From: Podarcis muralis
Lineage: Eukaryota
NCBI RefSeq assembly: GCF_964188315.1
Contig: NC_135658.1
Coordinates: 1,736,001-1,800,000 of the forward strand
Reading direction: 5' to 3'
Length of the DNA stretch: 64,000 nucleotides
Position numbers and translations under genes: made by a program. Positions 33,101-57,760 of the stretch are shown here, in pieces. How positions within the stretch are numbered: the stretch's first letter is position 1; the number at the start of each line of letters is the position of its first letter. The notes under the pieces were generated by a model that was not told where the DNA came from, searched no databases, and saw nothing but the letters and a program-made list of their open reading frames with translations.

Positions 33101-34290
33101 ATAAGCAGAGTTGTGTTGGATCAGGCCAATAGCTCATCTGGTCCAGCATCCTTTTCTGTGGAAAATAAGCGCAGCCTTACTGCCTGTGGCACACTCACGT
33201 GTGCTCTGACCTGTTGTGCAACTTGAGGATTGACGCCACATGGCTGCCTACAGTCCAAAGCGAAAAAGCAGATTAAGAAGACCAATCTGGTACCCAGGAA
33301 TTATCTACTGGAAGAGAAAGCGGTGGTGCTCCCAGGAAAGGCCACTCCAGTTTATCAAAAGCCTCCTTCAAGCATAGCTTGGGTCTGCTGGCACTGCCTT
33401 TGATGGAGCATCACAGGAGCCCAGCTGGAGGCCCAGACACCTTCCTGTGAATCGTTGGGGGCTTTCTGTGCAGAGGTGCCGACATGAGCGGGACTTGCCC
33501 ACAGGATATGGCCACCCCCCTTTCATGGGAAGATGTTCAAAGCGCAGACCCTGGCTGGCGCTGAGCTCCCCACCCAGTCCCGAGACCCCACAGAGTGTCT
33601 GCACAAACAGGAAGTTTTGAAGCGTGGAAAAGGCACCAGCAAACTAAGACATCTGAGGGAGCTAAGCTTCTCACTTCAGCAGCTTTGTGTGTCCACCCAC
33701 ACAGCCACCCAAAGGGATGTGGGCAAGAGGAACTGAAGCCTTTGCCCACTAGGCCCACTGAAACTCTTGATCCTGGGTATCTTAATGCTCTGTGCCAGAA
33801 AGATATAAGCCAACCAGAAGGAGAGAGAAAGAGAAGGCTAGCGGCAGCTCCAGAGCTTTGGCTGAGACCAGCACAACAGCTTCCCAGTTGGAGTCCTGAA
33901 GTGCTGGAGGACATCCTGGGTCAAGGCAACTCCTCTGCCAAAAATCCCTCCAGCATTGTCAACGAAGTTCCAGGAGGCCAACAGGAGACCAAGAGGGGCT
34001 AAGGGCTCTCTGGACAGCTAGGGAGGACCCAGCTAGGGTGGACTCCTCTGTTCCCCCTAAGGCCAAGGGAGCCAGAAAGGGCCCCGCAACACACACCTAC
34101 TTCCTCGGTGGCTTTCAGGCATCTGCTGAGGATGGTTTTTAATGTAATGTCTTCCTTCCCCGACTCTTATAAGCACCCCTAAGAAAACCCAGCCTGAGTA
34201 AAGGAGCACTGAGGCAAGGCCATTGTAATATCCACCATGCTGACTTTAGTGTATCAGGTGACCCTACAAGAGGCAAAGGTAAATCTGTTG

Positions 34291-36132
34291 CTAGGATGCA
34301 CGAGAGTTCGTAAGCTTCTCAACCGCTGCACCAATATCTCCATCTGTGTCAATTAAAGCTTGCAGGTTCAGTTCCTGGTTCTGGAAGCCCATCATCTGGA
34401 GCTGCTGCAGCTGCATCTGATAGAGGACCACTGGAGCTTGCTGATCCATTTCTTCGTCTTCCTCCTCCTCCTCCTCTCTTCCTCCTCTTCTTCTTCTTTT
34501 TCGTCGTCCCCGTCTTCTTTCTTCTGCTTTGGACTCACTGCTTTCTAACTCCAGGCTTTCGTCAGCCGAGATGAGGCTCCCTGCTTCCGAGGACGGGCTC
34601 TCTCCCTCGTCAGAGTCTTCCATGCTCTCGGGCTCAACGTCCGGGTCCGTCAAGGCTTGGAGGAAATCGGGCACTTCTCTTGTCAGGGTCAGCAGGCTCA
34701 TCTGCAGCTGGAGGAGAGCCTGGACCGCTCTGGGGTTGGTCAGCAGTGCAGCGGCCTCTGACCTCTCCAGTTTTGCAGGGAGCTGCTGCACCCACCCTTG
34801 AGGCAGAGAAGCATCGTTACTCTCGGGGGAGTTGCAATGGCTGAGGAATAACTGGGTAGGCCCATCGGGTTTCGAGAGGGCATTGGACATGTTCTGCATG
34901 AACTCCAGGTTCTCTGTGAGTTGGTGAACCATGTTCTGGATGCTTTCGGACTTGCTCAGCTCAGGCCGGACTCCCGGGCCTAAAGCAAGCAGAATGTAGC
35001 CCTGACCAGCATCATTATTGGTACCATTGAGGTCACTGTTGCAGAAATTGTCGCCACCACTGTTGTTGGGCTGAGGAGCCCAGGGATTTGGCAGGGGCTC
35101 TCTGTTTTCTGTCCTGGCCAGAGGGCTGATCCCCCCAGAAGGGGGCTTGTTCTCTGACGGGGCAAACGTGTTGCCCTGGAACTGGGCTTGGACTGCGTTC
35201 AGCATGGGGGCCTCTATGTCGTTGTAGAGCTGCTGCAAGGCACTGTACCCACCTGGGATGCTTTCGAGGTTGCTCAGGGCTCGGTCGTGGTTCCTGATGA
35301 TCTCGTCCATCACCGCCGGGCTGGTGGCCACGTCGATCATCTCCCGCAGGAACTCGGAGTTGTTGAGGATGTGGTTGATCTCAGGGTTCTGCTCAGCCAG
35401 CTGCTGCATCTGCGGGACGGACATGATCATCTGCCTGACCTGCTCGGTGTCGCCAAAGAGGTTCTGCACGAAAGGGTGCTGCATCACCTCGCTGATGAGC
35501 TCCTGCCGGGTCATGTCCTGTTCGTGGGCCTCGCCCACAATGTCAGACACGTCCATGGAGCTCAGGCCCAGAACGTTCATGCCGGTGACGCCAATGAGGA
35601 AGCCCAAGAGAAGCGGGTTGTTGTTCAAGGTGGAAGCATCCAGGTTCAGAGTGACCATCTGAAGCAAGAGGTTCTCCATGATCTGCGCGACCAGCTTGTG
35701 GCATGAAGCCATCAGCTCTTCCGGCTGGTTGCTCCACTCGGACAGGTCAAGGCTGTGCTCCGAGGAGGCCTCGCTGGAGAGCAACATGCTTGTGGGTGGC
35801 ACAGGCAGGAAGGAAGTGGGGCCAGTGTTTCCCGGGGAGGGCACAGGGTTCCCCGACAGCCTCCTTTGCGACTTGACGAAGAGGTGCACTTTGGACCCAC
35901 TGACAATCTTGTGCTGCGCCAGAGTGTCCTGGTCCTTGAGGATCTCGCCGGCAAAGATCAGCGACAGCTGCTCCAGGGGCATCTTGAAGCGCTCAGAGAT
36001 GAGCTTTTTGAAGTCCTGCACCAGGGTGCTCTCAGCCACCTCAAAGTGCTCCTTGCGCTTGAGGGTCTTGACGGTCACCTTGATGACGCGGGTGCCGGCG
36101 GCAGCCCCGTGGGGCTTCTTGCTCTCGGACAT
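34291..36132 (-). CDS. Intronless ubiquilin A (UBL-STI1-STI1-UBA), 613 aa
   Basis: UBL (IKVTVKT...[14 protein letters not shown]), STI1 region ([39 protein letters not shown]), C-terminal UBA ([29 protein letters not shown]). Confidence 0.93.
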
Positions 36133-36451
36133 GGCTGCTGAGGAGCAGAGGTTCAGGGAGAAGGAGGAAAGCGGGGCGTCTTCCTTTCCTTCCGGTGTGG
36201 CGGCGATGCTGCTGCTGCTGCTGCCGCTGCCCCCGCCACTTGTTGCCGTAGAGGACGCGAGAGGTGGGAAGGGGCCAGTGGTCTGCTGCTGCCCCCCTTT
36301 GTCTCAACACTAGCCAAGGCCAGAGCGCACATAACAGCGAGATGTTGCCTTCCTTTTCCGCTTGCTCACAACCTGGCAGGCACCTTCATTTTCCTCTTCT
36401 CCCCTCTGCTGCTGCCAGAAGACATGGCCTCTCTGTGAAGCTGCCTGGACT

Positions 36452-36475
36452 GTGAGGTCACCGCTGACCTCACAG
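36452..36475. promoter_or_regulatory. Dual CRE-like motif upstream of ubiquilin A (core of a perfect 11-bp inverted repeat)
   Basis: GTGAGGTCACCGCTGACCTCACAG; related motifs at 43037 and 53417. Confidence 0.55.
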
Positions 36476-36603
36476 AGAACCGGGAGGGGAGGCCCTGGTG
36501 GGCAAGGCCTCCATGGGTGCCCCCCTCCCCAATAAAGGGGAGTGCAGTGGTGCACTTAACTGGAGTGACTTGGGGCGGGGGAGCGTGCTTTCGTTGCTAA
36601 ATG

Positions 36604-37010
36604 CTTTCTTTTTTAAAAAAATTATTGGGAATTTTATTTACAATACAACATAAACCCCCCACCCCCCAATACAGAAATCCACCCTCATTAAACGTGAACA
36701 TAAGATACAATAAGCATAGCATACAACAATACAAACAACCAAATAAAAGATTTCCTTTATCCTGTATTTACTTCTTATAAGCTGTTTCCTTTATGAATAG
36801 TTATTAAGATTTTTCTAATTATAACTTAAATATCCACAAAGTCTCCTGCAAGAGATAGGAGTCCAGGTATGTATTTTAGGGCACTGTTTTGTGAAGTATT
36901 CTCTGCATTTCCCCCATGCTTTTCGAAACTCTTGTCTAGTGTGGTCTCTCATTGCCTCTGTTAATCTAGCCAGTTCAATAGACTCTAATAGACTTCTTCA
37001 CGCAGAACAG
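36604..37010 (-). mobile_element. L1 3' end
   Basis: Minus frame SIELARLTEAMRDHTRQEFRKAWGKCREYF, then 3' UTR with AATAAA. Confidence 0.7.
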
Positions 37011-37845
37011 ATTGAAACTGTGGAACTCATTGCCACAAGAGGCAGTGACGGCCACCAAGCTGGGTGGCTTTAAAAGAGGATTGGATGAATTCGTGGAGGA
37101 GTTGAGGGCTATCAGTGGTGACCAGCCAAGGTGGCTGTGCTCTGTCCTCCACATTTGAAGGCAGAAATGGTTCTGGATCCCAGTTGTTGGAAGCCACAGG
37201 AGGGGAGATGGTTGCTGCTCTTGTGCTGGAGTTCTACTTGCAGGTTTTCCACGGGGCTCTGGGGGGGGGCACTGTGAGAATGGGATGCTTTGAGGACACT
37301 GTGAGAAGAGCAGCCCTCCTCTTCTGTTCTTGGGAATTTGCTTATTGGGCCAGGCAACCTCTGCTAGGCTAGTTGGATTGCTTGCTTTTACTTACATTCC
37401 GCTTGGCCTTTGGCTTGGAATCAATTTGATTCCCTCCTCCTCTTTCTTTTTTCCTTTCTCCTGTGTTGGAACTCCTCTGTGTTGGAACTCCTGTTTGGGG
37501 ACTTCCCTGGCTTTCTTCTGGCCCATGTAGGACCAGTCTGGATAGTTAGCCTTGGTGAAGACTTGACGTTTTTATCCCCCCAAATGTTTTTGATTGAGTT
37601 TCCACTGAAATGAGGCTGTATTTTAATGTTTTAATGTATTTTAATCTTGTTTTTTAAGATGTATTTCATTCAATTGTTTTTATATTTGGTGTTAGCCGCC
37701 CTGAGCCTGGTCTTGGCTGGGGAGGGCGGGGTATAAATAATTTATTATTATTATTATTATTACACGCCGCTTTCCCACGATGTGTTGTGCCCAAAGGGGC
37801 TGACAGAAAGCACCCCTAACTTCAAAATAGAGAACACTGGGAATA

Positions 37846-38132
37846 GAAGAAGAAGAAGAAGAAGAAGAAGAAGAAGAAGAAGAAGAAGAAGAAGAAGAGT
37901 TTGGATTTGATATCCCGCTTTATCACTACCCGAAGGAGTCTCAAAGCGGCTAACATTCTCCTTTTCCTTCCTCCCCCACAACAAACCCTCTGTGAGGTGA
38001 GTGGGGCTGAGAGACTTCAGAGAAGTGTGACTGGCCCAAGGTCACCCAGCAGCTGCAGGTGGAGGAGCGGGGAATCAAACCCGGTTCCCCAGATTACGAG
38101 ACTACCGCTCTTAACCACTACACCACACTGGC
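37846..38132 (-). mobile_element. Squam3-like SINE with (TTC)n tail
   Basis: Matches other copies. Confidence 0.88.
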
Positions 38133-38739
38133 ACCATACAAAGGTACGAAATGCAGAACACGCCAGTAAGTTCAAAATAACAAAAGTCAACTATTTAGCA
38201 AACACAGAATAAATTCAATTCAATTAAAACAAAACAAAACCCCAGCCCATTAGGCTTAAGGACACAAATACAAAGTGGAAAATGTAAATTAACCAACAAT
38301 AATGTTCCTGGTGCTGGCCTTGCTGCTCTGCAAGGAGCCTGGCTTAAATGCAGTTCAGAGGGGAGGGCATGCCGCTGGCTCCCATGTCTCTACTCCAGAG
38401 GAGGCTGGCAGCAGCAAAAGGTCAATCTCGGGGAGGACAACGATGGTCCGTGTCTGCCTCAGCCTCCTCAAAGTACCAACTGCTGGTGCAGGCCTAATTG
38501 CACTTACCTCCTCCACGTTCTGTTGAAGGGGGGGCACTGGATATCTGCCCCCAAAGTTCCACCCTATTGGCACCAAGTGGCTGAGGATTTAATACATTTA
38601 CACACAAGTTTTCAATAACAACCCTTCCCAAAGAGGTTAGCAACCTACACACCAGCAACACTCTCTGCAGATCCTGCATTTCAGAGATACCACAATGTCA
38701 CGTTCAGGGATCCCCTTCTTTCTTTGAATTCCAGGAAGA

Positions 38740-38853
38740 AGAGCCAGCGTGGTGTGGTGGTTAAGAGTGGTGGACTCGTAATCTGGTGAACCGGGTTCGC
38801 TTCCCCGCTCCTCCACATGCAGCTGCTGGGTGACCTTGGGCTAGTCACACTTC
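38740..38853 (+). mobile_element. Squam3-like SINE 5' fragment
   Basis: AGAGCCAGCGTGGTGTGGTGGTTAAGAG head. Confidence 0.8.
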
Positions 38854-39093
38854 TTGGGCTTCCCATCGGGGGCATTGGGTTGGCCAGTGTGAAAACAGGA
38901 CACCAAGCTAGATGAACCCTCTTTGGCCTGATCCAGCAAGCGTTGGCCTCTTGCATGATCAACAGCAGTGGGATTTACACCTAGGAAAGGTCAAGACTCC
39001 CAATAGTTTGGAAGTCAGTTCTAATGGAAGTGTCAGGGTTGGGTAGCACCAGGAGCCAACTGTCCGCAAGAAGTCCTGGAGAAGATAGGCATT

Positions 39094-39305
39094 TATTTAT
39101 TTATTTATTTATACATACATACATACATACATACCCCACCCATCTGGCTGGGTTTCCCCAGCCACTCTGGGCGGCTTTCAACAGAACTTTAAAAACAGAA
39201 TAAAACTTCCAACATTAAAAACTTCCCTAAACAGGGCTACCTTCAGATGTCTTCTAAAAGCCAGAGAGTTGTTTATTTCCTTGACATCCGATGCGAGGGC
39301 ATTCC
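39094..39305 (-). mobile_element. L2-like LINE 3' end
   Basis: Same family as 25046-25460. Confidence 0.55.
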
Positions 39306-39538
39306 ATAGACAGATAGATAGATTTGGATTACATCATCCAAATATCTTTTTAAAGAAAGGTAAAAGTAAAGCAGGCGGATGGATGTAACTCGATGACTGT
39401 GAGCAGCTGTGTGAGATGGCAGATTGTGGGGACCTCACAAACAGCCACCTCTCCAACCTTTTTCCAATGCCAGGGTCTCTTTGGCAGTGTGACTGAGCAA
39501 ATGATGGACACTTTTAGACATCACTCTTCTCCACAGCA

Positions 39539-39885
39539 GGGACGTGGGTGGCGCTGTGGTCTAAACCACAGAGCCTAGGGCTTGCGGATCAGAAGATCGG
39601 CGGTTTGAATCCCCGCGACGGGGTGAGCTCCCGTTGCTCGGTCCCTGCTCCTGCCAACCTAGCAGTTCGAAAGCATGTCAAGTGCAAGTAGATAAATCGG
39701 TACCACTCTGGCGGGAAGGTAAACAGCATTTCCGTGCACTGCTCTGGTTCACCAGAAGCGGCTTCGTCATGCTGGCCACATGACCCGGAAGCTGTACGCC
39801 GGCTCCCTCGGCCAATAAAGTGACATGAGCGCCGCAACCCCAGAGTCAGCCACGACTGGACCTAACAGTCAGGGGTCCCTTTACC
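39539..39885 (+). mobile_element. Sauria SINE, full length
   Basis: TSD CTTCTCCACAGCAG flanking. Confidence 0.92.
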
Positions 39886-40523
39886 TTCTCCACAGCAGCC
39901 TTGCAGAGCAGGCCTGGAACACAGGGAATCCCACAAGCAATGATGTGAGGATGAGTGGGTGGTTTGGCTCCAGTGTGGACCTGGTTGTAGCATGAGGTGG
40001 TCTAGGCAGCAGCCGACTTCATCTGAAGCACAGAGCAGCTGGTTCTTGCTAGATGCCCAGAAAGAAGATGGGAACCATGTTGAAATAAACCAGCCAGGCT
40101 GCTTCCACAGACGGCACACTTATTGTGGCATGGCCACCCCTTTGCTTGTTTGCTTTTTTGTGGCATCTGCACAGCATCAGGAGGAAAACATCCTCCTCCC
40201 AGGTTTTCCCTTTTTGGCTCCCATCCCCTCTAGAGCTCACAAGATCCACCTTTTAAAGGTGCAATGTTTCAGAGAGTGGATGGCCCATGGCATTGCTTTT
40301 TAGCCTGTTAAGAACTATATAGTCATTTCCCAAATTGGTCTCTGTGTTCCCCTCTTCATGGCCTGCCTCTCCTCTGTAGGAATTGGCTCTGTCACCCCAA
40401 CTCTTCCCTTTCCAAATATCATTGTGACCATATCGCTCCTTCCTCCTTTGCTCCCTCACTCCTAAATTGTCGGCAAGTGGGGGCAATGGCGAGGGAGGGT
40501 GTGCTTAACCCTTTCTCCTCTCA

Positions 40524-41010
40524 GGAGAACCAGGGTGGTGCAGTGGTTAGAGTGCTGGTCTAGGACCTGGGAGAGCAGGGTTCAAATCCCCCCACTCTGC
40601 CATGAACTTCACCGGGAGGTGAGAGCCCCTGCCTCTCAGCCTAACTTACCTCACAGGCTTGTTGTGGGGATTAAATGAAGAAGAAGAAGAAGAAGAAGAA
40701 GAAGAAGAAGAAGAAGAAGAAGAAGAGGAAGAGGAGTTTGGATTTGACATCCCGCTTTATCCCTACCCGAAGGAGTCTCAAAGTGGCTAACATTCTCCTT
40801 TCCCTTCCTCCCCCACAACAAACCCTCTGTGAGGTGAGTGGGGCTGAGATACCTCAAAGAAGTGTGACTGGCCCAAAGTCACCCAGCAGCTGCAGGTGGA
40901 GGAGCGGGGAAGCGAACCTGGTTCCCCAGATTACGAGTCCACTACTCTTAACTGGGAGAACCATGTGCACCACCTTGAATTCTGCAGAGAAAAAAGATGG
41001 GATGCAAATG
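40524..41010 (+). mobile_element. tRNA-derived SINE interrupted by an antisense Squam3-like SINE (40677-40952)
   Basis: A/B boxes at 40531-40590; inner copy has a long (TTC)n tail in the opposite orientation. Confidence 0.75.
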
Positions 41011-41334
41011 CAGCAAATTAATTGATTAATGGTTCCAAATAAAATAAAAAAATAGGAGAGCAGTGAGACTGTTGGCTTTTGTTTATTACATTGCGTGGAC
41101 ATTAAAGTCAACCCATTTCAGAAGCCCCAGCCTACCAGAGGAGACCTTTTCATCGCCCTCACAGTCAGAACAGCCTCCGGCGGCCCCCCAACTGTTCAGC
41201 AAGAAGGGGACCCCTTCCCTCTAAGCCTCCTCCTCTTGTCCGTGGGCAAAGGGTCTGTCTGGGCTTTGTGGTGGCGCAACAAGTTTATTCTTGGGAGGGA
41301 GAAGATTTGAAGCTTGCCCAGGAGTTGGGTGGTC

Positions 41335-42732
41335 TTACTCAGAAGTGGCCGACCCTGGGCAGGGGTAGCCATTGACCCAGGGGCTCACCCCCGTGGAGTA
41401 GCCTCTCAAGCGCAGCATGAACCAGGGAACCAGCACAGGCGCCTCGGCCATCAGCGCCTGGAGCCCTTGTTCCATCTGCACCCAGGCCTGGATGGCTTTG
41501 GGGTTGGACATGGCGGCCACCATCTCTGGGCTCTGCATCTGCTGGGAGAAGTGGAGGACCTGCTGCTGCGCCTGCTCCTGTTGGGCCACTGGAGGCCTTT
41601 CTGCGGCCCGCAGGACGCTCTGCATGAGGGAGAAGATCATGCGCTTGGTGTAAGCGTTGCAGAGGTTGACAATCAGCTTCGGGATCTCGCTGGCATCTGG
41701 TGGTGGGAGGCTGCCCAGGCCAAACGCCCCAGCCCCGGACATGGGCGGCAGGTTGGGCATGGAGGAGCTTTGCCCTGGAGGGGGAGCCAGGCTGCTGAAG
41801 GCTGTGCTCTCCTCGCTGCAGGTGCTGTGGGTGCTGTGGGAGCTGTGGCAAAGGGGCAGAGAGCCCACACGATCCAGGCTCTCCAGCTGGGACCCATGGC
41901 TCCTCCCCAGGGTGGAGGCGAAGAGCTCCTGGATGGCGTTCAGCCCTGGTTCTGGTAGCTCACTGTTCAGCTGCCTCAGGGGGTTGTCCCCTCCAGGGAT
42001 GCTGCCGTGGAGGCTGATCAAGGCTTGGTCCGGAGCCTTCAGGTCCTGGAACATCTCTGGGTTCTTTGCCAGGTCCACAATCTCCCTCATCTTGTCCAGG
42101 ATCACCCTCATGATGTCCATATTGTCGAGTATGTGTCTGATGGCCGGGACCTGCTGGGCCAGCTGCTGGATCTCTGGGTTGGCCAGGATCACCTGCCGGA
42201 CCTTCTCGACAATCATCTCCGAGGTGGGCACCAGCTGCCACTCAGAGCTGGAGGGGGCTGCCTCAGGGGACCCCCAGAAGCCCCGCAGGCTCGAGCTGAA
42301 AGCTGGGGAGGGAAGGCTGCCCCCAGATGGTGTCAGGGCAGGTGGCCTGGTCTCGGGAACATAGGGAGACTGAGGAGGGTCTTCCAGGTCCCTTTTGAGA
42401 GTCCTGATCACCAGGTGTACAGTCATCCCGTCCGTGATCCCGCACTGGCGGAGCGTGTCCTTGTCCTTCAGGATCCTCCCAAAGTAGACCAGCACCAGCT
42501 GGCTGGTGTCGCAGGAGAAGTGCTTGGCAAGCTCCTCCTTGAACTGCTGGATGGTGCTGAGCTCTGGGAGCAGGAACTGGGCGCTGCTCTTGGGGGACTT
42601 TGCCGTGATGCAGATGAAGTTGGGGTTGGAGGCGAGGATGGGGCAGGCCTCTGGGGGCCCTTCCGGGTCTTTGTCCATGGTTTCCATGATGCACGGAGGA
42701 GGAAGAGGAGGAGGAGGAAGAGGGGCTTGCAT
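41335..42732 (-). CDS. Intronless ubiquilin B (UBL plus STI1, no UBA; UBQLNL-like architecture), 465 aa; alternative start at 42687
   Basis: UBL (LVLVYFGRILKDKDTL..TVHLVIR), STI1-like ANPEIQQL..NPEM, MSNPKAIQAWVQMEQGLQAL..EAP; no MGF/UBA. Confidence 0.88.
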   Translation of the reverse strand: MQAPLPPPPLPPPCIMETMDKDPEGPPEACPILASNPNFICITAKSPKSSAQFLLPELSTIQQFKEELAKHFSCDTSQLVLVYFGRILKDKDTLRQCGITDGMTVHLVIRTLKRDLEDPPQSPYVPETRPPALTPSGGSLPSPAFSSSLRGFWGSPEAAPSSSEWQLVPTSEMIVEKVRQVILANPEIQQLAQQVPAIRHILDNMDIMRVILDKMREIVDLAKNPEMFQDLKAPDQALISLHGSIPGGDNPLRQLNSELPEPGLNAIQELFASTLGRSHGSQLESLDRVGSLPLCHSSHSTHSTCSEESTAFSSLAPPPGQSSSMPNLPPMSGAGAFGLGSLPPPDASEIPKLIVNLCNAYTKRMIFSLMQSVLRAAERPPVAQQEQAQQQVLHFSQQMQSPEMVAAMSNPKAIQAWVQMEQGLQALMAEAPVLVPWFMLRLRGYSTGVSPWVNGYPCPGSATSE

Positions 42733-43036
42733 GGGAGAAGCGGGGCAGAGGCGTCTCGCTAGGCAGAGAAGGTGCCAGGGGAAGGACGGCGCTGCTTAAG
42801 TCACCTGGAGGACTGCGCTATGACAGCCACTGCGGTTGTGGTCCTTTAGGAGAGCAGCTGGCTGCCCCATACACTGGCGCTGGGGTGTGGCAAGCCTGAA
42901 GGCTCACGTGACAGCCCCCTCCCTGGACCTTCTTCTCTCCCCTCCCTCCCTCCCTCCCTCCTCCTGAGCGAAGGAGCTGCTCTCCACACCGCAGGCACAT
43001 CAAGGAGTGGGGGGGGGGGTCACTGTGACATCGCCA

Positions 43037-43060
43037 GTGATGTCAGCAATGATGTCGCCG
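43037..43060. promoter_or_regulatory. Dual CRE-like motif upstream of ubiquilin B
   Basis: GTGATGTCAGCAATGATGTCGCCG, 21/24 identical to 53417-53440. Confidence 0.6.
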
Positions 43061-43192
43061 CCACCCTCAAAGCTCTTGGTAGCTGGCAGAAGGAGCCTCC
43101 TGGAGGAATTGCAGCCCTCAGGTCCCCTCTGGAAGGGACAGGGCTGCTGCTCCGAGGCAAGGCCACCTGAGGCCAGGTCCTAGAGTTACCAC

Positions 43193-43500
43193 TTCATAGA
43201 ATTGAAGAGTTGGAAGGGATCCCCAAAGGTCCTCTATTCTGACCCCCTGCAATGCAGGAATCACAGCTAAGGAATCTCTGACAGATGGCCATCCAACCTC
43301 TGCTTATAGACCTCCATTGAAGGAGAGTCTGCCGCCTTCTGGATGAGTCTGCTCCATAGCTGTCAACTTTCCCCTTATTTAAAGGAAAATTCCCTTATTC
43401 CGAATAGGATTCCTTCCAAGAAAAGGGAAAAGTTGACAGCTATGGTCTGTTCCACCATCAAGCGGTTCAAGTTACAAAATACTTAGGCTCTCCTGGGGTG
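43193..43500 (-). mobile_element. CR1 3' end containing a second 90-bp hAT mini-MITE (43355-43444)
   Basis: CR1 tail in reverse; MITE TIR CATAGCTGTCAAC, TSD GTCTGCTC/GTCTGTTC. Confidence 0.75.
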
Positions 43501-43649
43501 TGTGCTGGAATCTTTTTGGGGCCTGGTGGGGAGCTTTTATCCTCCTAGGCTTTTCAGAAACTCATTTTTTCATGCATTTCAGCTTAAAAGACAGCAGCCC
43601 TCTTTTACTCTCCCCTTTGGATTTTAAAGCTTTTCATACTGATTTCTTT

Positions 43650-44200
43650 TTTAAAAAAAAAGAATACTTTATTTAGAATTCAACAATAATAAAGGGAAAA
43701 ACCACAGTAGTTGTTACATCAATTCATTACAATTAACCTGATTTTAACAATATACAAATAGTAATAGAAAAATTACACATCACTTTTAACTTACTGAAGT
43801 TTTCATATTACACTTTTTTCTCTTTATCTCCTTCTTAACAAATCAAAAAGAGAAAGGCTAAAAAAGGAGGCACAAAAAAAGAAAAGAGAAAAGGAAGAAG
43901 AAAAGGGGGGAAGGGGGAAGGGGAACAAAAGAAGGAAACAAAACAAATATATTTGACTTCCGAGTAGACTCATTGTATTATTATTTCTACTATTTTTTCA
44001 CACACAGTTCCAATATGATAGAATACTTTATAGTGATTTTATGCTGCTCTATGATAGCATTATATCGGTCACGCTTGGCGTGGATTGTTTTAGGGTTAGA
44101 ATTTGAATATTGCATTTCTATTGATTCCCCCCCCCCTTCCCGACAATGGGTGGTGATAACATTCCAAAGAAGGAGGGATAGTGAGCTAGATAAACAGAAT
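43650..44200 (-). mobile_element. Probable L1-type 3' end
   Basis: AATAAA on the minus strand with purine/pyrimidine-biased 3' UTR; no clear peptide match. Confidence 0.4.
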
Positions 44201-44428
44201 ACATTTCTCTCCTTTTCCAAACCGTTTCCTGTGCCTGACAAGCCGCAGAAAAGATTCCTGCACTGCAGGGGGTTGGAATAGACAACGTTTGTGGTCCCTT
44301 CCAACTCTACAATTCTATGGTTCCATGAGTTCCCTCATCCTAAACAATCCTTACCTTTCCACCTCTGGACAAGACCTTCCTCACTGCACTGCACCAAATA
44401 TCATATTACTGGCACAAAATAAATGTTA

Positions 44429-44484
<56 letters not shown>

Positions 44485-44909
44485 CACTTCTTCTTCTTCT
44501 TCTTCCTCTTCTTTGGTGGCCCCTCGTAGCCAAGTTAAAACATGGTTTTAACAATGAGTCTGTAAGTGTCTGTGGAGGCCAATTCTGGACCCACACATCC
44601 TTCCACAGGGGGGACATTGGTTTCCGGGCAGGAGTTGATCCCGGTGAGGGTTTGGCAAGCGTGCCTTCCTCTAAGCACATTTCTCCCTTGCGTCCTGAGT
44701 TCGAGCATCTTCAAAGTCCATGGCACCTTTGGTCAAGGCTGTCACAGGCCCGTGTTTTCCAGTTGTCAGTGTTTATATTACATTTTTTCCAGATTTGCCT
44801 TGAGGCAGTCTTTAAACCTTTTTTGTTGACCACCAGCATTACGCTTTCTGCTTTTAAGTTCGGAATAGAGTAGCTGCTTTGGAAGACGATCATCAGGCAT
44901 TTGCACTCG

Positions 44910-45150
44910 CTGGATCATCACCTTGTTGTGGTGAGTGGGCTTGCATTATCCTATGACCCTTGTGAGCGAAGCCATCGGGAATCTCGTACTCCCAGCAGGG
45001 TCACCCAAGGTGGTAAGGTCAAAGAGAAGGAGCTAGACAAAGAATGATCCAAGAAGTCCTCAAAGGCAGAACAGGTGGATGATAACAAGTGGTATGTTAC
45101 AATGGCTGTGAAGGCGGATGAAGGCTGCAGCAGATAGGAATCTACTGGTT
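44910..45150 (+). mobile_element. RTE-like LINE 5' leader remnant
   Basis: ACCTTGTTGTGGTG..GGGCTTGC..CAGGGTCACCCAAG resembles RTE/BovB 5' ends (from memory). Confidence 0.4.
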
Positions 45151-45505
45151 TGTCGTGACTACTTCATACCATCGGAAAAGAGCCCTACTGTGAAGACTGT
45201 GCGTTGGTCAGCGTGCACTGATCTACACACATAAAACAAATTCACCCACAGGCGTCTTCCAAAACACACACACACACACACACCTAGGAGCTCATCTGTA
45301 CAATTCTTGATGCATTCTGCAGAAGGCACATGCAGAAGACGACGGTAGGGGCAATCTTTTCTGGAAGATATTTGTATTTTGAGGAGTTTAGTGATCTGAC
45401 ATGGTCGTCTCTTCCTGCCTCTCTTTACCTCCCCTCTCTGTCTCTTGTTCTGCTCTTTGATGGCTGAGAATAGCCTTTTAATGCCCTGGTTTGTGGAAGG
45501 AAGTA

Positions 45506-46721
45506 CCGTATTTTTCCCCTCTATAACATGCAGATTTTTTCTCCTAAAAAGGAAGGGGAAATGTCTGTGCGTGTTATAGAGCGAATGTGTGGTCCCTGGA
45601 GCCGAAAAATCAGGCAAAAATCAAATTGCGCTTCACGGAGAAGGGAAACCTGAAAAGAGGAAGCGGCTGCTTTCCTGCATTCTGCCTCAGGGTCTTACTG
45701 CCCACCCTCCTCTGTTTCGTTGCTGTGTTTGCTCAAACGGAACAAAGAGCAGGGAAAGCCCCTCCCCTCCAGGCAAGCAGAGTGTGTTCCTTCTAATTCC
45801 TCTCTGTGCTCCGGTGCTGCTGGGGGAGAGGGAGAGGGGGGGAGGGAGAGAGAGAGGGGGAGGGAGAGAGGGGGGGAGGGAGAGAGAGAGAGAGAGAGAG
45901 AGATGGCTGGCTTGGGTGGGGGGAAACTTTTGCCTTTCTTGCCTCCCTCCCGTTAAATCCCTCTCCTGCATTCTTAGCCAGCTGCTTCTCTGCACACCCC
46001 TCTCATGTCCCTTCTTTGTTTTTCCTTTGCTCCCCACTTAAAATGTGGTTAAAAAGCATAGATCCACATGGATCCTCAGGATCTTTGCATTGGGTCACCC
46101 CAAATTCACCACCAGATCACATAGCATGTCCATGGCTACAGCCTGCCCCCCCCCCAAAATCACACACCCACTATTGCCTGGGGCTGCAATGGTGCAAAAA
46201 CGTGGTTAAAAAGCATGGATCCATATGGATCCTCAGGATCTTTGCATTGGGTCACCCCAAATTCACCATCAGATCACATAGCATGTCCATGGCTACAGCC
46301 TGCACCAAAAAAATCACGCACCCACTGTTGCCTGGGGCTGCAATGGTGCAAAAACGTGGTTAAAAAGCATGGATCCATATGGATTCTCAGGATCTTTGCA
46401 TTGGGTCACCCCAAATTCACCATCAGATCACATAGCATGTCCATGGCTACAGCCTGCACCAAAATAATCACGCACCCACTGTTGCCTGGGGCTGCAATGG
46501 TGCAAAAACGTGGTTACAAAGCATGGATCCACAGGAATTCTCAGGATTTTTGCATTGGGTCACCCCAAATTCACCACCAGATCACATGTCTGTGGCCACA
46601 GCATGAAGCACAAAAATGATACATCCACTGTTTCATTCAGAATGTTTTTTCCCTTGTTTTCCTCCTCTAAAAATGATGTGCGTGTTATGGTCAGGTGCGT
46701 GTTATAGAGCGAAAAATACGG
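45506..46721. mobile_element. Tc1/mariner-pogo-type MITE, 1.2 kb, with an internal tandem array
   Basis: TIRs CCGTATTTTT(C)CCTCTATAAC / GTTATAGAGCGAAAAATACGG; TA TSD at 45504-45505 and 46722-46723. Confidence 0.85.
46045..46590. repeat. About 154-bp tandem repeat, 3 full units plus a partial unit
   Basis: Units start at 46045, 46202, 46356, 46510. Confidence 0.92.
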
Positions 46722-47216
46722 TAATAGCGTTGGGCACCTTCCTTCTTTGAAGTGAGACATTGGAGAGGTGGCTAGCTAAGGAATCATCTGCGCTAGCTAG
46801 TCGGGCAAGGCACGTAGGCTAACAAGTTAGCTATCTGTAAATCAAATGGTTTGGGGGCATAGCTCTCAGAAGCTCATGCAACCTGAGTCCACCTGGGGTC
46901 CCTTCACCACTTCTTGGCGGCTTCCCAGTGGCAGATTGAAGTGCTTCCTTGGTAATGTATATAATGCTTATTGTTTAGAATAAAATCTTTAATCTTCTCA
47001 CTTGTGCTTGTATTGCTTCTGAATCTCATCAAAAGAACCATCTGCATTTGGCAAGACAACAGCCTAGCTCAGGGTGCTGAACTCAGCACTGCTATGGTTA
47101 CTCTTGGTGTATTAAAAAATGTAGATGAATACATCAGATGGAAACCTCTCTCCCTTCATTCTAGGGATCACCCTCCATCCCTGCCCCTTTCCTTGTCAGT
47201 GAATGGGGAGCTGCTT

Positions 47217-48173
47217 TTAGGTAACTGGTCTGTTGAAACATTGGTGGAACAAACTGGTGACTCTCCTCAGGATCTCCTTGGTCTTCACCCCATAAACAAT
47301 GGGGTTCAGCATGGGAGGGATGAGGACATATAAGTTGGCCAGTAGGATGTGAACATAGCCTGGGATGTGGTGGCCAAAGCGATGAGCAAAGAAGGAGAAG
47401 AATGCAGGTGTGTAGAACATGAGGATGACACAGAGGTGGGAGCCGCAGGTGCTGAGTGCCTTCAGGCGAGCGTCTTTGGAGGAGAGCCGAAACACAGCCC
47501 TCAAGATCAGACCGTACGATGCTGCTATCAGCAAGGTGTCCACACCGATGGCCAAGATGGCCACCATGAAGCCATACCAGATGTTGACCGTGATGTCGGA
47601 GCAAGCCAGCCGGGCGATGCCCATGTGCTCGCAGTACGTGTGGGGAAGGATGTTGCGTTGGCAGAACGTCAAGCGCTTGACGAGGAAGATGACCGGGAAA
47701 ATCACGCAGAAGCTTCTGACCATGGCAGCCAGCCCAATTCTCCGGATGACTGAACTGGTCAGCAAGGTGGTGTAGCGCAGCGGGTCGCAGATGGCGATGT
47801 AGCGGTCAAAGGCCATGGCCATGAGGATGGCCGACTCGGCGATGAAGACGCTGTGGATGAAGAACATTTGGGCTAGGCAACCTTCGAAGGAGATCTCCCC
47901 GGCCTTGAACCAGAAGATGGCCAGCATTTTGGGAGCGGTGGAGGTGGACAGAAGCAAGTCGGTGACAGCCAGCATGGAGAGGAAGAAGTACATGGGCTGG
48001 TGGAGGCTGCGCTCTGTGAAGATGATGAACAGCAGAGTGCTATTCCCCACCAGAGCCACAATGTACATCAGGCAGAAGGGGATGGAGATCCAGATGTGAA
48101 AGGCCTCCATCCCTGGGATGCCAGTCAAGATGTAGGTGGTGGGGGGCAAGGAGCTGTGGTTGGCTGGCAGCAT
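47217..48173 (-). CDS. Class I olfactory receptor family 52 (OR52B-like), intact, 318 aa
   Basis: [55 protein letters not shown]; NHS glycosylation site. Confidence 0.93.
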
Positions 48174-48599
48174 CTGGGGCCTCGGAAGGGCTTCCTGGTA
48201 GCTGTGGTGGATGTAAGCAGGGATCCGTTCCCTCCCCAGCAGGCACTATGGATGGAAGACAGTTCACAGGGAAGAAAATCTACTGGGATCTGGAACAAAT
48301 CCTGAGGAAGATGAGGCAAGCATGTCTTCTGCTGCTCCAAAGGGGAGGACCCAAACTGATGGATTCAAACCACAAGAAAGGAGATTCTGATAAGCATTAG
48401 AAATAATTTTCTGAGGCCAAAAGCTGTTCGACAGCAGAACAGATGCCCTCGATGGACTCTCTTTCATAGGAGATTTTAAAAACAAAGTTGGGTATTCTTT
48501 TGTATTGTGCTTTCTGCATTTACGAAGACAGCAGAGTCAACACAGAGTTAAGCCAGAATGTGGAAACCCTGCAGCCGTGTAGAGGGTCTGTCTGGTGGG

Positions 48600-48690
48600 C
48601 ATAGCTGTCAACTTTCCCCTTTTCTTGTGAGGAATCCTATTCGGAATAAGGGAATTTCCCTTTAAAAAATGGGAAAAGTTGACATCTATG
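48600..48690. mobile_element. Third copy of the 90-bp hAT mini-MITE (opposite orientation)
   Basis: Perfect TSD CTGGTGGG. Confidence 0.88.
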
Positions 48691-49939
48691 CTGGTGGGTC
48701 TCCTCTCCTGCCCGCCCTGAACAAGGAAGCTTTGTGTGTGCTAACAAATAATAAATAAATAATACACACGTCTAGAGAACTCATTCAGCTGTCAAACCTC
48801 TCCTTCCTTCCTTCCTTCCCTCCCTCTGGCATTTGTGTTCGGTTAATCTGACTTTAGCAGGAATGGCACAGCAGACACGCAAAGGTGTATGAAAACACTT
48901 CTGTGTTTCTTTGAAGAGGGTCCACCTGGCAGCAATGTGGTTTTTTAAAAAAAACCCATTTGTAATTTTTCAATAGGTTGCAAGTTTAGTGCATATACCT
49001 CTTTAATTCCTCCATAATTTCCATCTGACATTGGACTTCCCTTCTGTGGTTCTCCGTATTTTCCAATATTGCTGCATATTATAACTTATTCTGCACTCTG
49101 TCCTCACCATACTATTCCAAAAGCCGTCGTTTACTGCTGCTCATTATTCAAATCCTACTTGTGTCTTTATATGCTTACAATAGCTTTTTAAGCATTCTGC
49201 AAATGGTTTCCAGTCCTCCTTAAAACCTGCCTTTTCTTGATCTCTAATTTCACTGGGCAGCAATGTCAAGGGCCCTGCCTGAGAACGTCCTTCCTAGTCC
49301 AAGCTGCCCCTCCCAACCCCTGGGCTGACCCCCTTCAGCACCCCCGTCCAACAGATTTGAACCACACCTACCTGCCCCAGATATTTTGCCCACTCCTCCT
49401 TGGAAGGCAGCAGCAGGAACTGGCTCTGTGCAAAGTTCTCACCTGCCTTTAGCTCCAGCAAGCAGAGAAGCTCAGAGATGGGATTTGGGTCCCCCAGGCA
49501 GCAGCAGAGACAGGCATTTGAAGGAGGCTGGGTCCAAGGAGCTGCGGGACTTGGGCCGCCTCGTGTCTCCTTGGGAGTCCTGAGGGGGGTTTGGAGGCAG
49601 GTGCTGGTGCTGGTGGAGGAGAAGGGACCTCCTGGGACCCACTTTTCTCAGGCTCAGGGGGAATTTTCAAAAGGCAAGGAGAGCATAACCCTTAGTTTGC
49701 TCTGGGAGGCTAAACGATCTTTTCTTCTGTTGCACAGTAAAGTACTTGCCTTGTAGTCAGGTCCCAGTCCCACCTGCGCCTTGGGTTCAAGAGAGTCTGG
49801 GATTCCCCTAGACATTCTCAGTGGGCATGTTTCCCTACACTCAAACTCTGTGGCCCAAGAACCCCACCCCTGACTCAGTGGGCTTCACAGATAGCCGTGG
49901 ATTTGAACCAGGGTATTTCCCCGTTTGCAGAGAATCAGA

Positions 49940-50185
49940 GACTCAACTTGTAGAGTTGGGAGGGACCCCTAGAGTCATGAAGTCCAACCCCCTGCAATGC
50001 AGAATCCCAATTAGTTCATCCATGACAGACGGCCATCCAACCTCTGCTTGAAAACCCCCAAGGAAGGAGAGCCCACCACCTCCCAAGGGAGACTGTCCCA
50101 CTGTTGAACAGCTCTTACTGTCAGAAACTTCTTCCTGATGTATCTTCAGAACCTCCTTTGTTGTAATTTGAATCCATCGGTTCAA
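49940..50185 (-). mobile_element. CR1 3' end
   Basis: Reverse CR1 tail (CCCCCTGCAATGCAG...GGCCATCCAACCTCTGC). Confidence 0.75.
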
Positions 50186-50222
50186 GCTTGCTCCACCCGC
50201 CATGCGGAAGCCCTTCAGCCTA

Positions 50223-50453
50223 CAGCGGTACCTCAGGTTGCAGATGCTTCAGGTTACAGACGCTTCAGGTTACAGACTCCGCTAACCCAGAAATAGTACC
50301 TCAGGTTAAGAACTTTGCTTCAGGATGAGAACAGAAATCGCATGGCGGCAGCGGGAGGCCCCATTAGCTAAAGTGGTGCCTCAGGTTAAGAACAGTTTCA
50401 GGTTAAGAACGGACCTCCAGAAAGAATTAAGTTCTTAACCTGAGGTACCACTG
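50223..50453. mobile_element. Tigger-like MITE, 231 bp
   Basis: TIRs CAGCGGTACCTCAGGTT / AACCTGAGGTACCACTG; TA TSD. Confidence 0.88.
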
Positions 50454-51720
50454 TATTTGAAGATGGCTATCATGTCCATTCGCTGTCTTTCCTTCTCCAT
50501 CTCCATTCTTTGTCCGAAAGGGTCCACCTCGATCTCCAGAGCAGCCTTGAAGCCATAGGGATTCACAGCTCCTAGGAGCTGAAGCACTTTTGCCCCCAGG
50601 GGGTTTTTTGGCTGCTGAGAAGAGGCTGCTGGAGTAGGTGGTCCCCTCTTTGGCCTGGCCCAGCAGGTGCTTTCCACTGCTTGATCGTTGTTGTTGTTGT
50701 TCTTAAACCCACCCTCAAAGCATTTTACAAAAAGATGAAACAAGAAAACCAAGAACAAATTGCAGCCATACCATATCCCCCAACATTCATCAGATGAAAA
50801 TAGGGACATTTCTCTCACACGCACCCCTCCCCCAATGTCCCTCATTGATGTCCCATTTTTGTGACCCCCCCCCCCAAGCATTTCCTATCTGGAGGACGCT
50901 TGCAAGCATTCCCTCCCCCCACAAGTAGGACACCCTCCAGCGTCCTGAGAAAACCCATTGATCCCAATTTTATTCTTTGGCAGATTTACAAAAAGAAAAA
51001 CACAGATAAATAAATTTAGATGCAGACACACAAATCATTTCTTTTCTTTTCTTTTTTAAAAAAGTCAAGACTCCTTGTGCTCCACTCTCCATTTCTTTAC
51101 CCCCAGGGTGGCTCTGCCCTCTGCCTGCATCGCAGAGCTGGCGCATCATGCAGGCGGGGCCTTGGCAGTGGTGGCCTCTCTTCATCCTCACCTGCTCTTC
51201 AGCAGCTGCCATGAGCAGCCCAAGGGAGGAGAGGCCATGGAGAGACAATGGGATGCTCCTTTGCCACCACTCAGGGAAAATGCCGGCTCACCACAAACTC
51301 AGTGGTGGCAGCACTGGCAGGGGGAATAGGGACACTCTGGGAACCAATCAGAAGCTGGGATGGCTTCTGCATACCTGAAGGAGCATCTCCACCCCCACCG
51401 TCCAGCTCGGACACTGAGATCCAGTGCTGAGGGCCTTCTGGTGGTTCCCTCATTGCGAGAAGTGAGGTTACAGGGAACCAGGCAGAGGGCCTTCTTGGTA
51501 GTGGCACCCGCCCTGTGGAATGCCCTCCCTTCAGATGTCCCTGGGAAATCGGGGCGCTTGGAGGGTACGCCTACCAACAGAGGAGCCAACAGAGGAGACT
51601 TTTTGAAAGATTTAAAGCCTTTTAATCACAAACCATGTAATCCACGCCTTTGCAGAGCTCCAGCATCGGCACAGCAGCTGCAGGAGTCCAGCCTTGGCTC
51701 AGCTTCCGTCCTCTTCCGCC

Positions 51721-53229
51721 TCAGAGTTTGTACGTCCGCTTCTGCTTGGAAGACGGCTGCGCGGACGAGCCCCGCAGGCGGCTGGCGGTCTTCACGCCAG
51801 CTAAGAAGTCAGCGCCCACCAGAGTCTCCAAGATCTGCTGGGCAGTGACATCCTGGCGCCCCACCCTCGAGACGGGGGGCACCATGTCGCAGAGGGAAGT
51901 GATGGAGTGCGCCCTCCGCGCGGGCCGCTCGGATCTGCCTCGCCTCTCTGTTCCCGGCTCGTCTGTGGCGAGTGCCTGCAGCCTCTGCTGGATTTCTACC
52001 AGCCCCTGGATCTCCTTGGGGCTCCAGTTGGCCAACAGGATGTCTGTGCTTTGAATCTGCTGGAGGAGGTCTGGGACCTGCGGGGCCGCCTGCCCCCGGG
52101 GGCTCCTGGACACGGAGGTGTTCCTGCGGACCATCTTGGCCACCACCTCCGGGGTGTGGCTGCTCCTGGAGGGGCTGCTAGATGCAAGGTTCTGCATCAG
52201 ATGCTTTATGATTTGGTGGAGGAGGTTCTTCACAGCTGCCGAGGCGAGTTGTCCTGTCTCTCCCCTGAAGGCGCCGCTTTCCCCGTTGCTCTGATCGTTG
52301 CCATTGGGTGCTAGGTTCTGGGCACCAGGCTTTGGAGGCCAAGTTCTGGGAGAAGGCAGCCTCTCCCGGGCCCTCTCAAGCCTTTCACCATGGTCAAAGG
52401 TGGGTGGGTGGCCCCCCAGGGATCCTGGCGAGGGGCTTGCCCCGCACCGCTTTGGAATGGCCTTCTGCCCTAGTCCTCTTTGTGCCTCAGGGAACGCACC
52501 CTGAAGGACACTGTTGTTGTCTCCACCAGGGACGCTTCCAGGGCAAGTGGTGGCCTGGGGAGGCGATTTGATGAACTCCTTCACGACCGCTGGGTTCCTT
52601 GCCAGTTCCACCACCAACCTCATTCCTTCTGGGGAGCTGAAGACGTGGCTGATCTCAGGGGCTTTCTGCATCACCTGCCGCACCTGCGGGTTGCTGGTGA
52701 CCAGCTCCTTCATCAGGTCAGGGCTGGAGAGCTTGCTCTGGATGAAGGGGTTCTCCAGCAGTTGCACCATCATGTCTGGGTTGGACATGAGCTGGCTCTG
52801 GAACTCTGAAAAGTTGGCTGTGTTGAGGCCCAGGCTGGCGGTCAGCTCCCGGAGGCCATCGCTGGCAAAAGCGTCTCCCCGAGGAGGCTTCTGATCTGGG
52901 GCAGTGCTGGTAGGGCTGGCGGAAGCCTGTCGGGACAGGCGCCCCCGGGGAGACCGGATGACCACGTAGACTGTTGCGTCGTAGTCTAGGTGGATGCCAT
53001 GCTGGCCAAGGGTCTTGTGGTCTTTCAAGATCCTTCCGACATACACCAGCACAACTTGGTCAGGAGAAGAGGAGAAGTGCCTGGCGACGTGTTCTTTGAA
53101 TTCTCGGACCAACATCTCCCTGTGGACCAGAAACTCTTCCTTCTGCCACGGAGTCTTCACGATGATCCGAACAACTTGGGGCTCAGCGGCTCTGAGGTCA
53201 ACCCCCGGGATTCTCTGGCTTTCGACCAT
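51721..53229 (-). CDS. Intronless ubiquilin C (UBL plus STI1, no UBA), 502 aa
   Basis: UBL (VVLVYVGRILKDHKTL), UBQLN1-like LGLNTANFSEFQSQLMSNPDMMVQLLENPFIQ, ELARNPA; divergent C-terminal half; first ATG at 53229. Confidence 0.88.
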   Translation of the reverse strand: MVESQRIPGVDLRAAEPQVVRIIVKTPWQKEEFLVHREMLVREFKEHVARHFSSSPDQVVLVYVGRILKDHKTLGQHGIHLDYDATVYVVIRSPRGRLSRQASASPTSTAPDQKPPRGDAFASDGLRELTASLGLNTANFSEFQSQLMSNPDMMVQLLENPFIQSKLSSPDLMKELVTSNPQVRQVMQKAPEISHVFSSPEGMRLVVELARNPAVVKEFIKSPPQATTCPGSVPGGDNNSVLQGAFPEAQRGLGQKAIPKRCGASPSPGSLGGHPPTFDHGERLERARERLPSPRTWPPKPGAQNLAPNGNDQSNGESGAFRGETGQLASAAVKNLLHQIIKHLMQNLASSSPSRSSHTPEVVAKMVRRNTSVSRSPRGQAAPQVPDLLQQIQSTDILLANWSPKEIQGLVEIQQRLQALATDEPGTERRGRSERPARRAHSITSLCDMVPPVSRVGRQDVTAQQILETLVGADFLAGVKTASRLRGSSAQPSSKQKRTYKL

Positions 53230-53416
53230 AATGCTGCCAAGATTTGAGAGCAAGAAGCAAAGACCAAAGTCAGGCTTGGCTTCTCATCGCACTCCAAAGT
53301 GGTCCTGCCTTCTTTCCTCTGTCACCACGCAAGCTGTGGGTTCCCTCTTCTCGACATCCCCTCCCTCCCCCAGCCCAGAGGCCCTACACAACCTTCTGGT
53401 GTGGAACCCGTGATTT

Positions 53417-53440
53417 GTGATGTCAGCGCTGAGGTCGCCG
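53417..53440. promoter_or_regulatory. Dual CRE-like motif upstream of ubiquilin C
   Basis: GTGATGTCAGCGCTGAGGTCGCCG. Confidence 0.6.
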
Positions 53441-56803: not shown

Positions 56804-57760
56804 CTAGCAGCACCTCCACCTCCCTGTCCGCGAGAACACGTGGGTGACTCGCTCCCGTATCTGCCTCGTTCTCACCCCGTAGACGATGGGGTTGAGCATG
56901 GGGGGCACGATGACGTAGAGGTTGGCCAGCAGGATGTGGATGCAGCTGGGGATGTTGTGGCCAAAGCGGTGGGTGAGGAAGGAGAAGAAGGCAGGCATGT
57001 AGAACATCAGGATGATGCAGATGTGGGAGCCGCAGGTGCGGAGAGCCTTGAGGCGGGCCTCCTTGGAGGAGAGCTGGAAGACGGCCCTGAGGATCAAGCC
57101 GTACGACAAGGCAATGAGCACCACGTCCACCCCTGAGGACAGGAGGGTCGTCGTGAAGCCGTACCAGATGTTGATGGTGATGTCTCCGCAGGCCAGGCGG
57201 GCAATGCCCATGTGTTCGCAGTAGGTGTGCTGCATGGTGCTGTGGCCGCAGTAGGGCAGCCTCTTGAGGAGGAAGATGGGTGGGGACATGATGCACAGCC
57301 CCCTGACCACGGCCGCCAGGGCCACCTTCCCAATCACCGACGGGGTCAGGATGGCCATGTAGCGCAGCGGGTCGCAGATGGCAACGTAGCGGTCAAAGGC
57401 CATGGCCAGCAGGATGGTGGACTCCGCGATGAAGCTGAAGTGGGTGAAGAACATCTGGGCAATGCAGGCGTCGAAGGAGATCTTCCTGGAGCCGAACCAG
57501 AAGATGGCCAGCATCTCGGGCACAGTGACCGTGGACAGCAGGAGGTCCGACACAGAGAGCATGGCCAGGAAGAGGCACATGGGCTGGCGAAGGCTGTGGT
57601 CCGTGGCAATGAGGAAGAGGAGGAACGAGTTCCCCAAGAGGGCCACGACGTACATGAGGCAGAAGGGGACAGAAATCCACACGTGGGATTCCTCCATGCC
57701 AGGGATGCCGGTCAGGACAAACGTGACGGGGTCAAAGCTGCTGTCATTGAGAGCAGCCAT
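56804..57760 (-). CDS. Class I olfactory receptor family 52 (OR52B-like), intact, 318 aa
   Basis: OR52 motifs; NDS glycosylation site; acceptor TTTCTCTCTCCCTAG 44 nt upstream (AG at 57806-57805). Confidence 0.93.

Follow-up and report, generated by a model that had tools for sequence, protein, structure and literature searches.

Intronless ubiquilin genes in the class I olfactory receptor cluster of the lizard Podarcis muralis and their probable relation to mammalian UBQLN3, UBQLNL and UBQLN5

The DNA described here (the window) is a stretch of 64,000 nucleotides (nt) from Podarcis muralis (RefSeq assembly GCF_964188315.1, contig NC_135658.1, positions 1,736,001 to 1,800,000 of the forward strand). 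It contains three uninterrupted minus-strand open reading frames (ORFs) for ubiquilins of 613, 465 and 502 amino acids (aa), designated A, B and C, within a cluster of olfactory receptor (OR) genes. A preliminary description, made from the letters of the window, had reported three single-exon, same-strand ubiquilins of these lengths, and both the ORFs and the Pfam matches agree with it. All three proteins exceed the Pfam gathering score for the ubiquitin family (PF00240), and they score 92.8, 44.3 and 90.4 bits, respectively, against the ubiquilin STI1-like model (PF23195; cut-off 27). Their pairwise identity is 23-28%. Read in the sense in which the ubiquilins are transcribed, the cluster runs OR52 > C > OR52 > B > A, and beyond A lie three OR51-like genes in convergent orientation (8875, 20190 and 26233 on the plus strand). 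Receptors were typed by scoring them against the consensus OR51 and OR52 chains in the PDB, and this typing upholds the earlier placement of the ubiquilins between OR51-like and OR52-like genes, with an OR52 between the second and the third. The OR52-like gene between C and B has a counterpart at the same place in Lacerta, and an OR52-like gene upstream of B is also present in turtle and emu. The features of the locus are listed in the table.

Ubiquilin A comprises an N-terminal ubiquitin-like domain (UBL), STI1-like regions and a ubiquitin-associated domain (UBA). Residues 9-105 match the UBL structures of UBQLN1, UBQLN2 and UBQLN3, and residues 565-610 match the UBA structures of UBQLN1, UBQLN2, UBQLN3 and UBQLN4 (E 6e-10 to 6e-9). 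Squamates, turtles, birds and alligator have orthologues of A. In lacertids the linker that precedes the UBA contains a GAA/GAG/AGA/AGG purine repeat, read in a frame that yields an Arg-rich patch with acidic surroundings, and the equivalent position in other squamates is a Glu/Asp run. In Lacerta agilis the purine tract lies less than about 200 nt from the 3' end of the A ORF (19499-21361 of the fetched locus), and the NCBI model for this species turns part of it into a 36-nt gap. Because the tract is also present in Lacerta agilis, the Arg-rich patch is a real lacertid-specific change and not an assembly slip.

Ubiquilins B and C contain the UBL and STI1-like regions, and both sequences stop where the UBA of their relatives begins, or slightly earlier. 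Gene B lies directly upstream of A, as UBQLNL does relative to UBQLN3. It has orthologues in squamates, turtles, alligator and palaeognaths; after these, marsupial UBQLNL proteins are the best matches. The ORF of C extends over 51721-53253 on the minus strand, and the length of 502 aa is counted from the first ATG at 53229. Orthologues of C are present in squamates, turtles, Rhea and Apteryx, and this paralogue dates at least to the lizard-turtle ancestor. Among the bird matches, neognaths appear only for A, and the B and C orthologues come only from palaeognaths (tinamou, emu, rhea and kiwi). This suggests that B and C were lost in Neognathae.

Table. Positions in the window of the three ubiquilin genes, their associated elements and the neighbouring receptor genes
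Feature	Position	Strand	Basis
OR51-like receptor, convergent with A, on the OR51 side of the boundary	26233..27177	+	432 bits with consensus OR51 vs 351 with OR52
Unspliced A transcript, extent	34223..36434	-	RNA assemblies of two related lacertids
Ubiquilin A, UBL + STI1-like + C-terminal UBA	34291..36132	-	Pfam, structure matches, orthologues, dN/dS
Purine-repeat tract in A, Arg-rich patch	34477..34518	-	Shared with Lacerta agilis
Bipartite CRE-like element of A: TGAGGTCA, 4 nt, TGACCTCA	36453..36472	-	19-38 nt upstream of the 5' end of the transcript contig
Ubiquilin B, UBL + STI1-like, no UBA, UBQLNL-like	41335..42732	-	Pfam, orthologues, trees, dN/dS
Three CRE-like octamers with 12-nt spacing, upstream of B	43026..43057	-	
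OR52-like receptor between C and B	47217..48173	-	491 bits with consensus OR52 vs 393 with OR51
Ubiquilin C, UBL + STI1-like	51721..53229	-	Pfam, orthologues, dN/dS
Bipartite CRE-like element upstream of C	53418..53437	-	
OR52-like receptor upstream of C	56804..57760	-	453 bits with OR52 vs 365 with OR51

The three genes are under constraint. In comparisons with Lacerta agilis, dN/dS is 0.15-0.19 in A, 0.16-0.25 in B and 0.20-0.24 in C; no bootstrap upper bound exceeds 0.41, and the OR52 gene between the ubiquilins has 0.11-0.15. The proteins are 91-95% identical to those of Lacerta agilis, and B is 96% identical to that of Podarcis raffonei. Squamate orthologues of all three are intact from geckos to snakes. 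Between lizard and turtle the protein identity is 38-53% for A, B and C, as against 87% for UBQLN1, and the three genes evolve much faster than this parent.

Transcripts of A are present as single collinear contigs of 2120, 2157 and 1929 nt in three RNA runs, with word depths of 508, 405 and 344. Their match to the genome is collinear throughout, starting in the 5' untranslated region and reaching beyond the stop codon, and the depth is zero on both flanks. The A transcript is an abundant unspliced mRNA and not contaminating DNA. An RNA run of Podarcis muralis itself (X12) has no reads on A and serves as a negative tissue only. Upstream of A, at 36780-37210, many partial RNA reads and loose-ended contigs occur in all four runs and resemble an expressed interspersed repeat. 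Sequence words of B and C were found in six RNA runs of one 2017 study on a closely related species, and in one run of a third species. The 31-mers of B occur in runs X1-X5 and those of C in runs of the same study, and both are present in X1, X4 and X5; at least seven other RNA assemblies of Podarcis muralis lack the words of both genes. Strong expression is confined to some libraries, and male germ cells would be its most likely site; the reptilian spermatid proteostasis module of the preliminary description is still an inference. The literature and its supplements yielded nothing on the tissue expression of lizard ubiquilins. It is settled that all three ubiquilins are real genes, under constraint and expressed, and not dead retrocopies.

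The relationship of these genes to the mammalian ubiquilins was examined with a comparison set drawn from a profile search of 1.8 billion cluster representatives. This set comprises UBQLNL and UBQLN3 of eutherians, copies from platypus and echidna, a UBQLN5-type protein of a lagomorph, and a fourth turtle lineage, designated X. Careful maximum-likelihood (ML) trees were built under LG+C20 with posterior mean site frequencies (PMSF) for two data sets, of which the better sampled has 70 rows. All mammalian and sauropsid intronless copies form one clade (99/96 and 99/97 in the two trees). This clade is separate from UBQLN1, UBQLN2 and UBQLN4 and unites A, B and C with the mammalian members. It is nested in tetrapod UBQLN1 beside the amniote UBQLN1 sequences, with toad UBQLN1 outside (96/92). 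No amphibian members of the clade are present among the best 150 cluster representatives, which is a weak negative; the unnamed members come from birds, monotremes and rodents. A single origin and a common locus of A, B and C with the mammalian UBQLN3/UBQLNL/UBQLN5 group are regarded as settled.

Within the intronless clade, turtle X groups with the UBQLN5-type proteins (97/98 and 99/96), and UBQLNL groups with B and C (91/85). The X-UBQLN5 and UBQLNL-B groups both survive column trimming and the removal of long branches. One careful tree unites A with UBQLN3 (83/96). The backbone of the clade is a polytomy in the careful trees. Derived residues common to UBQLNL and B, some of them also found in C, include VF.GR for IFAGK, GGDN for GGYN, NPK for NPR, and LLPW..LWGLG. 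At the sites where UBQLNL and B are derived, A, UBQLN3 and UBQLN1 hold the ancestral states. No convincing indels are shared by A and UBQLN3 or by X and UBQLN5, and the large insertions are lineage-specific. The lizard genes do not correspond one to one to UBQLN3, UBQLN5 and UBQLNL: A is UBQLN3-like, B and C are UBQLNL-like, and a UBQLN5-like lineage was found only in turtles.

The gene order points to the same assignments. In the window, Lacerta, turtle, emu, platypus and otter alike, the immediate upstream neighbour of the UBQLN3-type gene is a UBQLNL-type gene in the same orientation, 3.5-8 kb away. Gene A thus sits where UBQLN3 sits, directly downstream of a UBQLNL-type gene, and is its positional counterpart. 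The locus of Lacerta agilis has the order C, OR52, B, A, as in the window. In emu the order is OR52 > B > A > OR52, and in turtle it is OR52 > B > A, and past A come X and an OR51-like gene, both in convergent orientation. Platypus has a UBQLNL-type gene followed by a UBQLN3-type gene of 517 aa (16065-17618 of the fetched locus), and echidna also has a UBQLN3-type protein. Beyond the platypus UBQLN3-type gene there is a gene of the sialyltransferase family and no OR, and a frame-broken olfactomedin-domain relic lies upstream. The otter locus reads olfactomedin-domain gene > UBQLNL > UBQLN3. Otter and platypus have the UBQLNL-UBQLN3 tandem, with no OR within the 10 kb fetched. In the marsupial Antechinus a UBQLN5-type gene is found 46 kb downstream of UBQLNL on the same strand, beside an OR52-like gene. 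Ubiquilins lie among class I ORs in the fetched loci of lizard, turtle, emu and marsupial, and in human the UBQLN3 gene is located within the OR cluster at 236 kb upstream of HBE (PMC1910613). The position was earlier said to be equivalent to that of the mammalian cluster, and these loci support that statement. The olfactomedin-domain neighbour of UBQLNL was seen only in platypus, koala, Antechinus and otter, and is absent from the window and from the sauropsid loci.

Turtle X is an intronless, UBA-bearing gene of 544-550 aa between A and the OR51-like gene. It has 550 aa in Mauremys (19861-21513 on the minus strand and 10001-11653 of the fetched loci) and 544 aa in Gopherus. A tblastn search of the window, including the 7 kb from A to the OR51 gene, found neither a fourth ubiquilin nor a relic of UBQLN5 or X.

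The upstream regions of the family contain a common element related to the cyclic AMP response element (CRE). It consists of TGACNTCA-type octamers, mostly in pairs 12 nt apart and framed by CTGTGA...TCACAG. The 600 nt upstream of 16 family genes (lizard, turtle, emu, otter, hare, Antechinus and koala) were searched, and 14 of the genes have such octamers, at a distance of 200-450 nt from the ATG. By chance 0.9-1.7 genes would be expected, and a count of 14 was not reached in any of 2000 controls made from shuffled sequence or random windows. The bipartite arrangement of A also precedes turtle A, emu A, otter UBQLN3, and the UBQLN5-type genes of Antechinus and Lepus. The window contains no copy of a perfect CRE (TGACGTCA), and TGACVTCA octamers are not enriched across it (10 observed vs 7.7 expected); only the position and pairing of the octamers upstream of the genes stand out. 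Since a processed mRNA carries no promoter, the element must predate both the tandem copies and the mammal-sauropsid split. The shared element suggests a common expression programme. In mammals, UBQLN3, UBQLN5 and UBQLNL are expressed post-meiotically and specifically in the testis (Marín 2014).

The only evolutionary study of the ubiquilin family is that of Marín (2014). It places UBQLNL, UBQLN3 and UBQLN5 after the mammal-sauropsid split and calls the evidence for a mammal-specific gain in ubiquilin genes 'very robust', so that the preliminary description was right to cite a mammalian expansion as the published account. The study credits platypus with UBQLNL only, and the monotreme UBQLN3-type gene runs counter to this. 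A few divergent sauropsid sequences were set aside as 'UBQLN6' (Marín 2014), a name for which no use was found in later literature. These highly divergent reptile and bird sequences, which fit no mammalian class, are probably genes of the A, B and C types. They were described as one sauropsid-specific duplicate in a handful of species (Marín 2014), whereas the present survey finds three to four separate, widely conserved genes at the locus of the mammalian group. The published mammal-specific expansion is outdated.

Each lizard gene resembles its closest known relative in some respects and differs in others. Mammalian UBQLN3 is a testis-specific intronless gene in the 11p15.4 class I OR cluster, and it shares with A the UBL-STI1-UBA architecture, the single coding exon, the same-strand place just downstream of a UBQLNL-type gene and, as seen in otter UBQLN3, the bipartite CRE-like element. 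The identity of the two proteins is only about 35-42%, however; the UBL of A is followed by an insertion of about 55 residues peculiar to this protein, UBQLN3 has another large insertion, and the linker of A is acidic and, in lacertids, Arg-rich. UBQLNL groups with B and less clearly with C, and has the derived residues and the upstream tandem place in common with B. In contrast, otter and marsupial UBQLNL retain the UBA, which is missing from B and C in the lizard, turtle, alligator, tinamou and Rhea alignments, and mammalian UBQLNL has the upstream olfactomedin-domain gene that sauropsid loci lack. UBQLN5, which is absent from humans, is represented by marsupial and lagomorph proteins that group with turtle X (99/96), and X lies in the same cluster. 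UBQLN5 has no counterpart in the lizard window. Turtle and marsupial do not agree in the orientation of the gene to its neighbours, and the two branches are both long. The closest canonical relative of A, B and C is the multi-exon parent UBQLN1, with 35-43% identity; it is far more conserved. UBQLN1 is broadly expressed.

The preliminary description had left two histories side by side, a cluster older than the mammal-reptile split and a parallel expansion. The trees, the derived residues and the gene order favour the first, and the AU (approximately unbiased) tests do not reject the second. It is likely that the amniote ancestor already had several intronless ubiquilins, with A equivalent to UBQLN3, B to UBQLNL, and C an extra paralogue on the UBQLNL side. 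Taken as a whole, the explanation that A, B and C are functional intronless sauropsid members of the UBQLN3/UBQLNL/UBQLN5 group, from a cluster that predates the split, is a probable one. Several observations weigh against it. The group of A with UBQLN3 is not recovered in the 70-row tree, and C is placed either as the sister of B or, in the trimmed tree, outside UBQLNL and B. The X-UBQLN5 group joins two long branches and drew a warning from the tree program. In turtle, X and A lie on opposite strands, and in Antechinus UBQLN5 shares its strand with UBQLNL. The AU test on the better-sampled set does not reject a mammal-only or a sauropsid-only clade (p 0.28 and 0.28), with a log-likelihood difference of 10.8 for a lineage-specific clade, and the first set gives p 0.17 and 0.049. 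To these may be added the source of the six runs with B and C words: a Podarcis siculus study of 2017 comprises six testis and six brain libraries (PMC5617171), which would fit the number of runs, and its identification as that source is a circumstantial guess.

A single ancestral gene at the OR51/OR52 boundary could instead have given rise to tandem copies separately in the mammalian stem (UBQLNL, UBQLN3, UBQLN5) and in the sauropsid stem (A, B, C, X), and the cross-lineage groups would then be artefacts of fast convergence. Reciprocal monophyly has only the small likelihood cost given above, the backbone is polytomous, and the orientations of X and UBQLN5 differ. Neighbours on one strand at distances of a few kb are what tandem duplication would produce in any case, and the shared order therefore does not decide the matter. 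Sequence alone leaves this history open because the AU tests reject neither lineage-specific clade. Such clades are never recovered in the ML trees, however, and the derived residues of UBQLNL and B at the same sites would need convergence. In both lineages the upstream gene is derived and the downstream gene has UBQLN1-like states and a UBA. Three sauropsid duplications would also have to be squeezed between the amniote split and the lizard-turtle split. Parallel expansion is considered unlikely, though a good deal less so than the following histories. Separate insertions of UBQLN1 mRNA in mammals and sauropsids at coincidentally equivalent positions would account for the lack of introns and for the very short stem on which the clade stands beside amniote UBQLN1. 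They are highly improbable given a single clade (99/97) away from both mammalian and sauropsid UBQLN1, the same OR51/OR52 neighbourhood, and the shared bipartite promoter element, which a processed mRNA does not carry. Recent, unexpressed retrocopies in neutral decay, with dN/dS near 1, had been named as the case that would overturn the proposal. That case fails: the values are 0.15-0.25 with low upper bounds, the orthologous ORFs are intact in squamates and turtles and for some genes also in birds and alligator, and transcripts are abundant. Practically no weight is left to it.

In the history with a pre-split cluster, a processed UBQLN1 copy would have inserted at the boundary between OR51 and OR52 genes of the class I cluster, in the interval between the amphibian and the mammal-sauropsid splits. 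There it may have gained a promoter with the bipartite CRE-like element, and tandem copying would most likely have produced at least two, and probably three, genes in the first amniotes. What is known of the family predicts that the UBL docks on the proteasome and that the STI1-like regions hold client proteins. The UBA of A would bind polyubiquitin, which would make A a complete shuttle factor. By the same reasoning B and C, with the UBA lost, may serve as holdases that do not depend on ubiquitin, or may modulate proteasome docking. It is slightly more likely than not that the testis ubiquilin cluster is an amniote-wide module about 320 million years old and no mammalian invention, with at least three genes (UBQLN3-, UBQLNL- and UBQLN5-type) and the bipartite CRE-like core promoter present in the first amniotes. 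Sauropsids would have added a fourth gene and twice made UBA-less ubiquilins that bind the proteasome and clients and not ubiquitin.

The same locus in reptiles and birds thus carries three to four conserved, expressed, intronless ubiquilins. With a pre-split cluster, the birth of this gene set, which is presumed to serve proteostasis in spermatids, would date to the origin of amniotes. Non-mammalian models for the function of these genes are on offer in Anolis, chicken relatives and turtles, and the promoter element can be tested for a regulatory role. Since both the family and its biochemistry are already well characterised, the result amounts to a modest revision within a known family and not to a new kind of system.

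Some further ORFs are present in the window. A full-length OR ORF at 2421-3395 on the plus strand is listed with a TTG start. Another OR ORF at 15825-16544 on the plus strand spans positions 1-203 of the 280-position Pfam model and is probably a truncated pseudogene. An ORF of 274 aa at 62492-63316 on the plus strand contains a GDSL/SGNH esterase-like domain with a weak OSK match. It is most likely ORF1 of a long interspersed nuclear element (LINE) of the CR1/L2 type and not a host gene.

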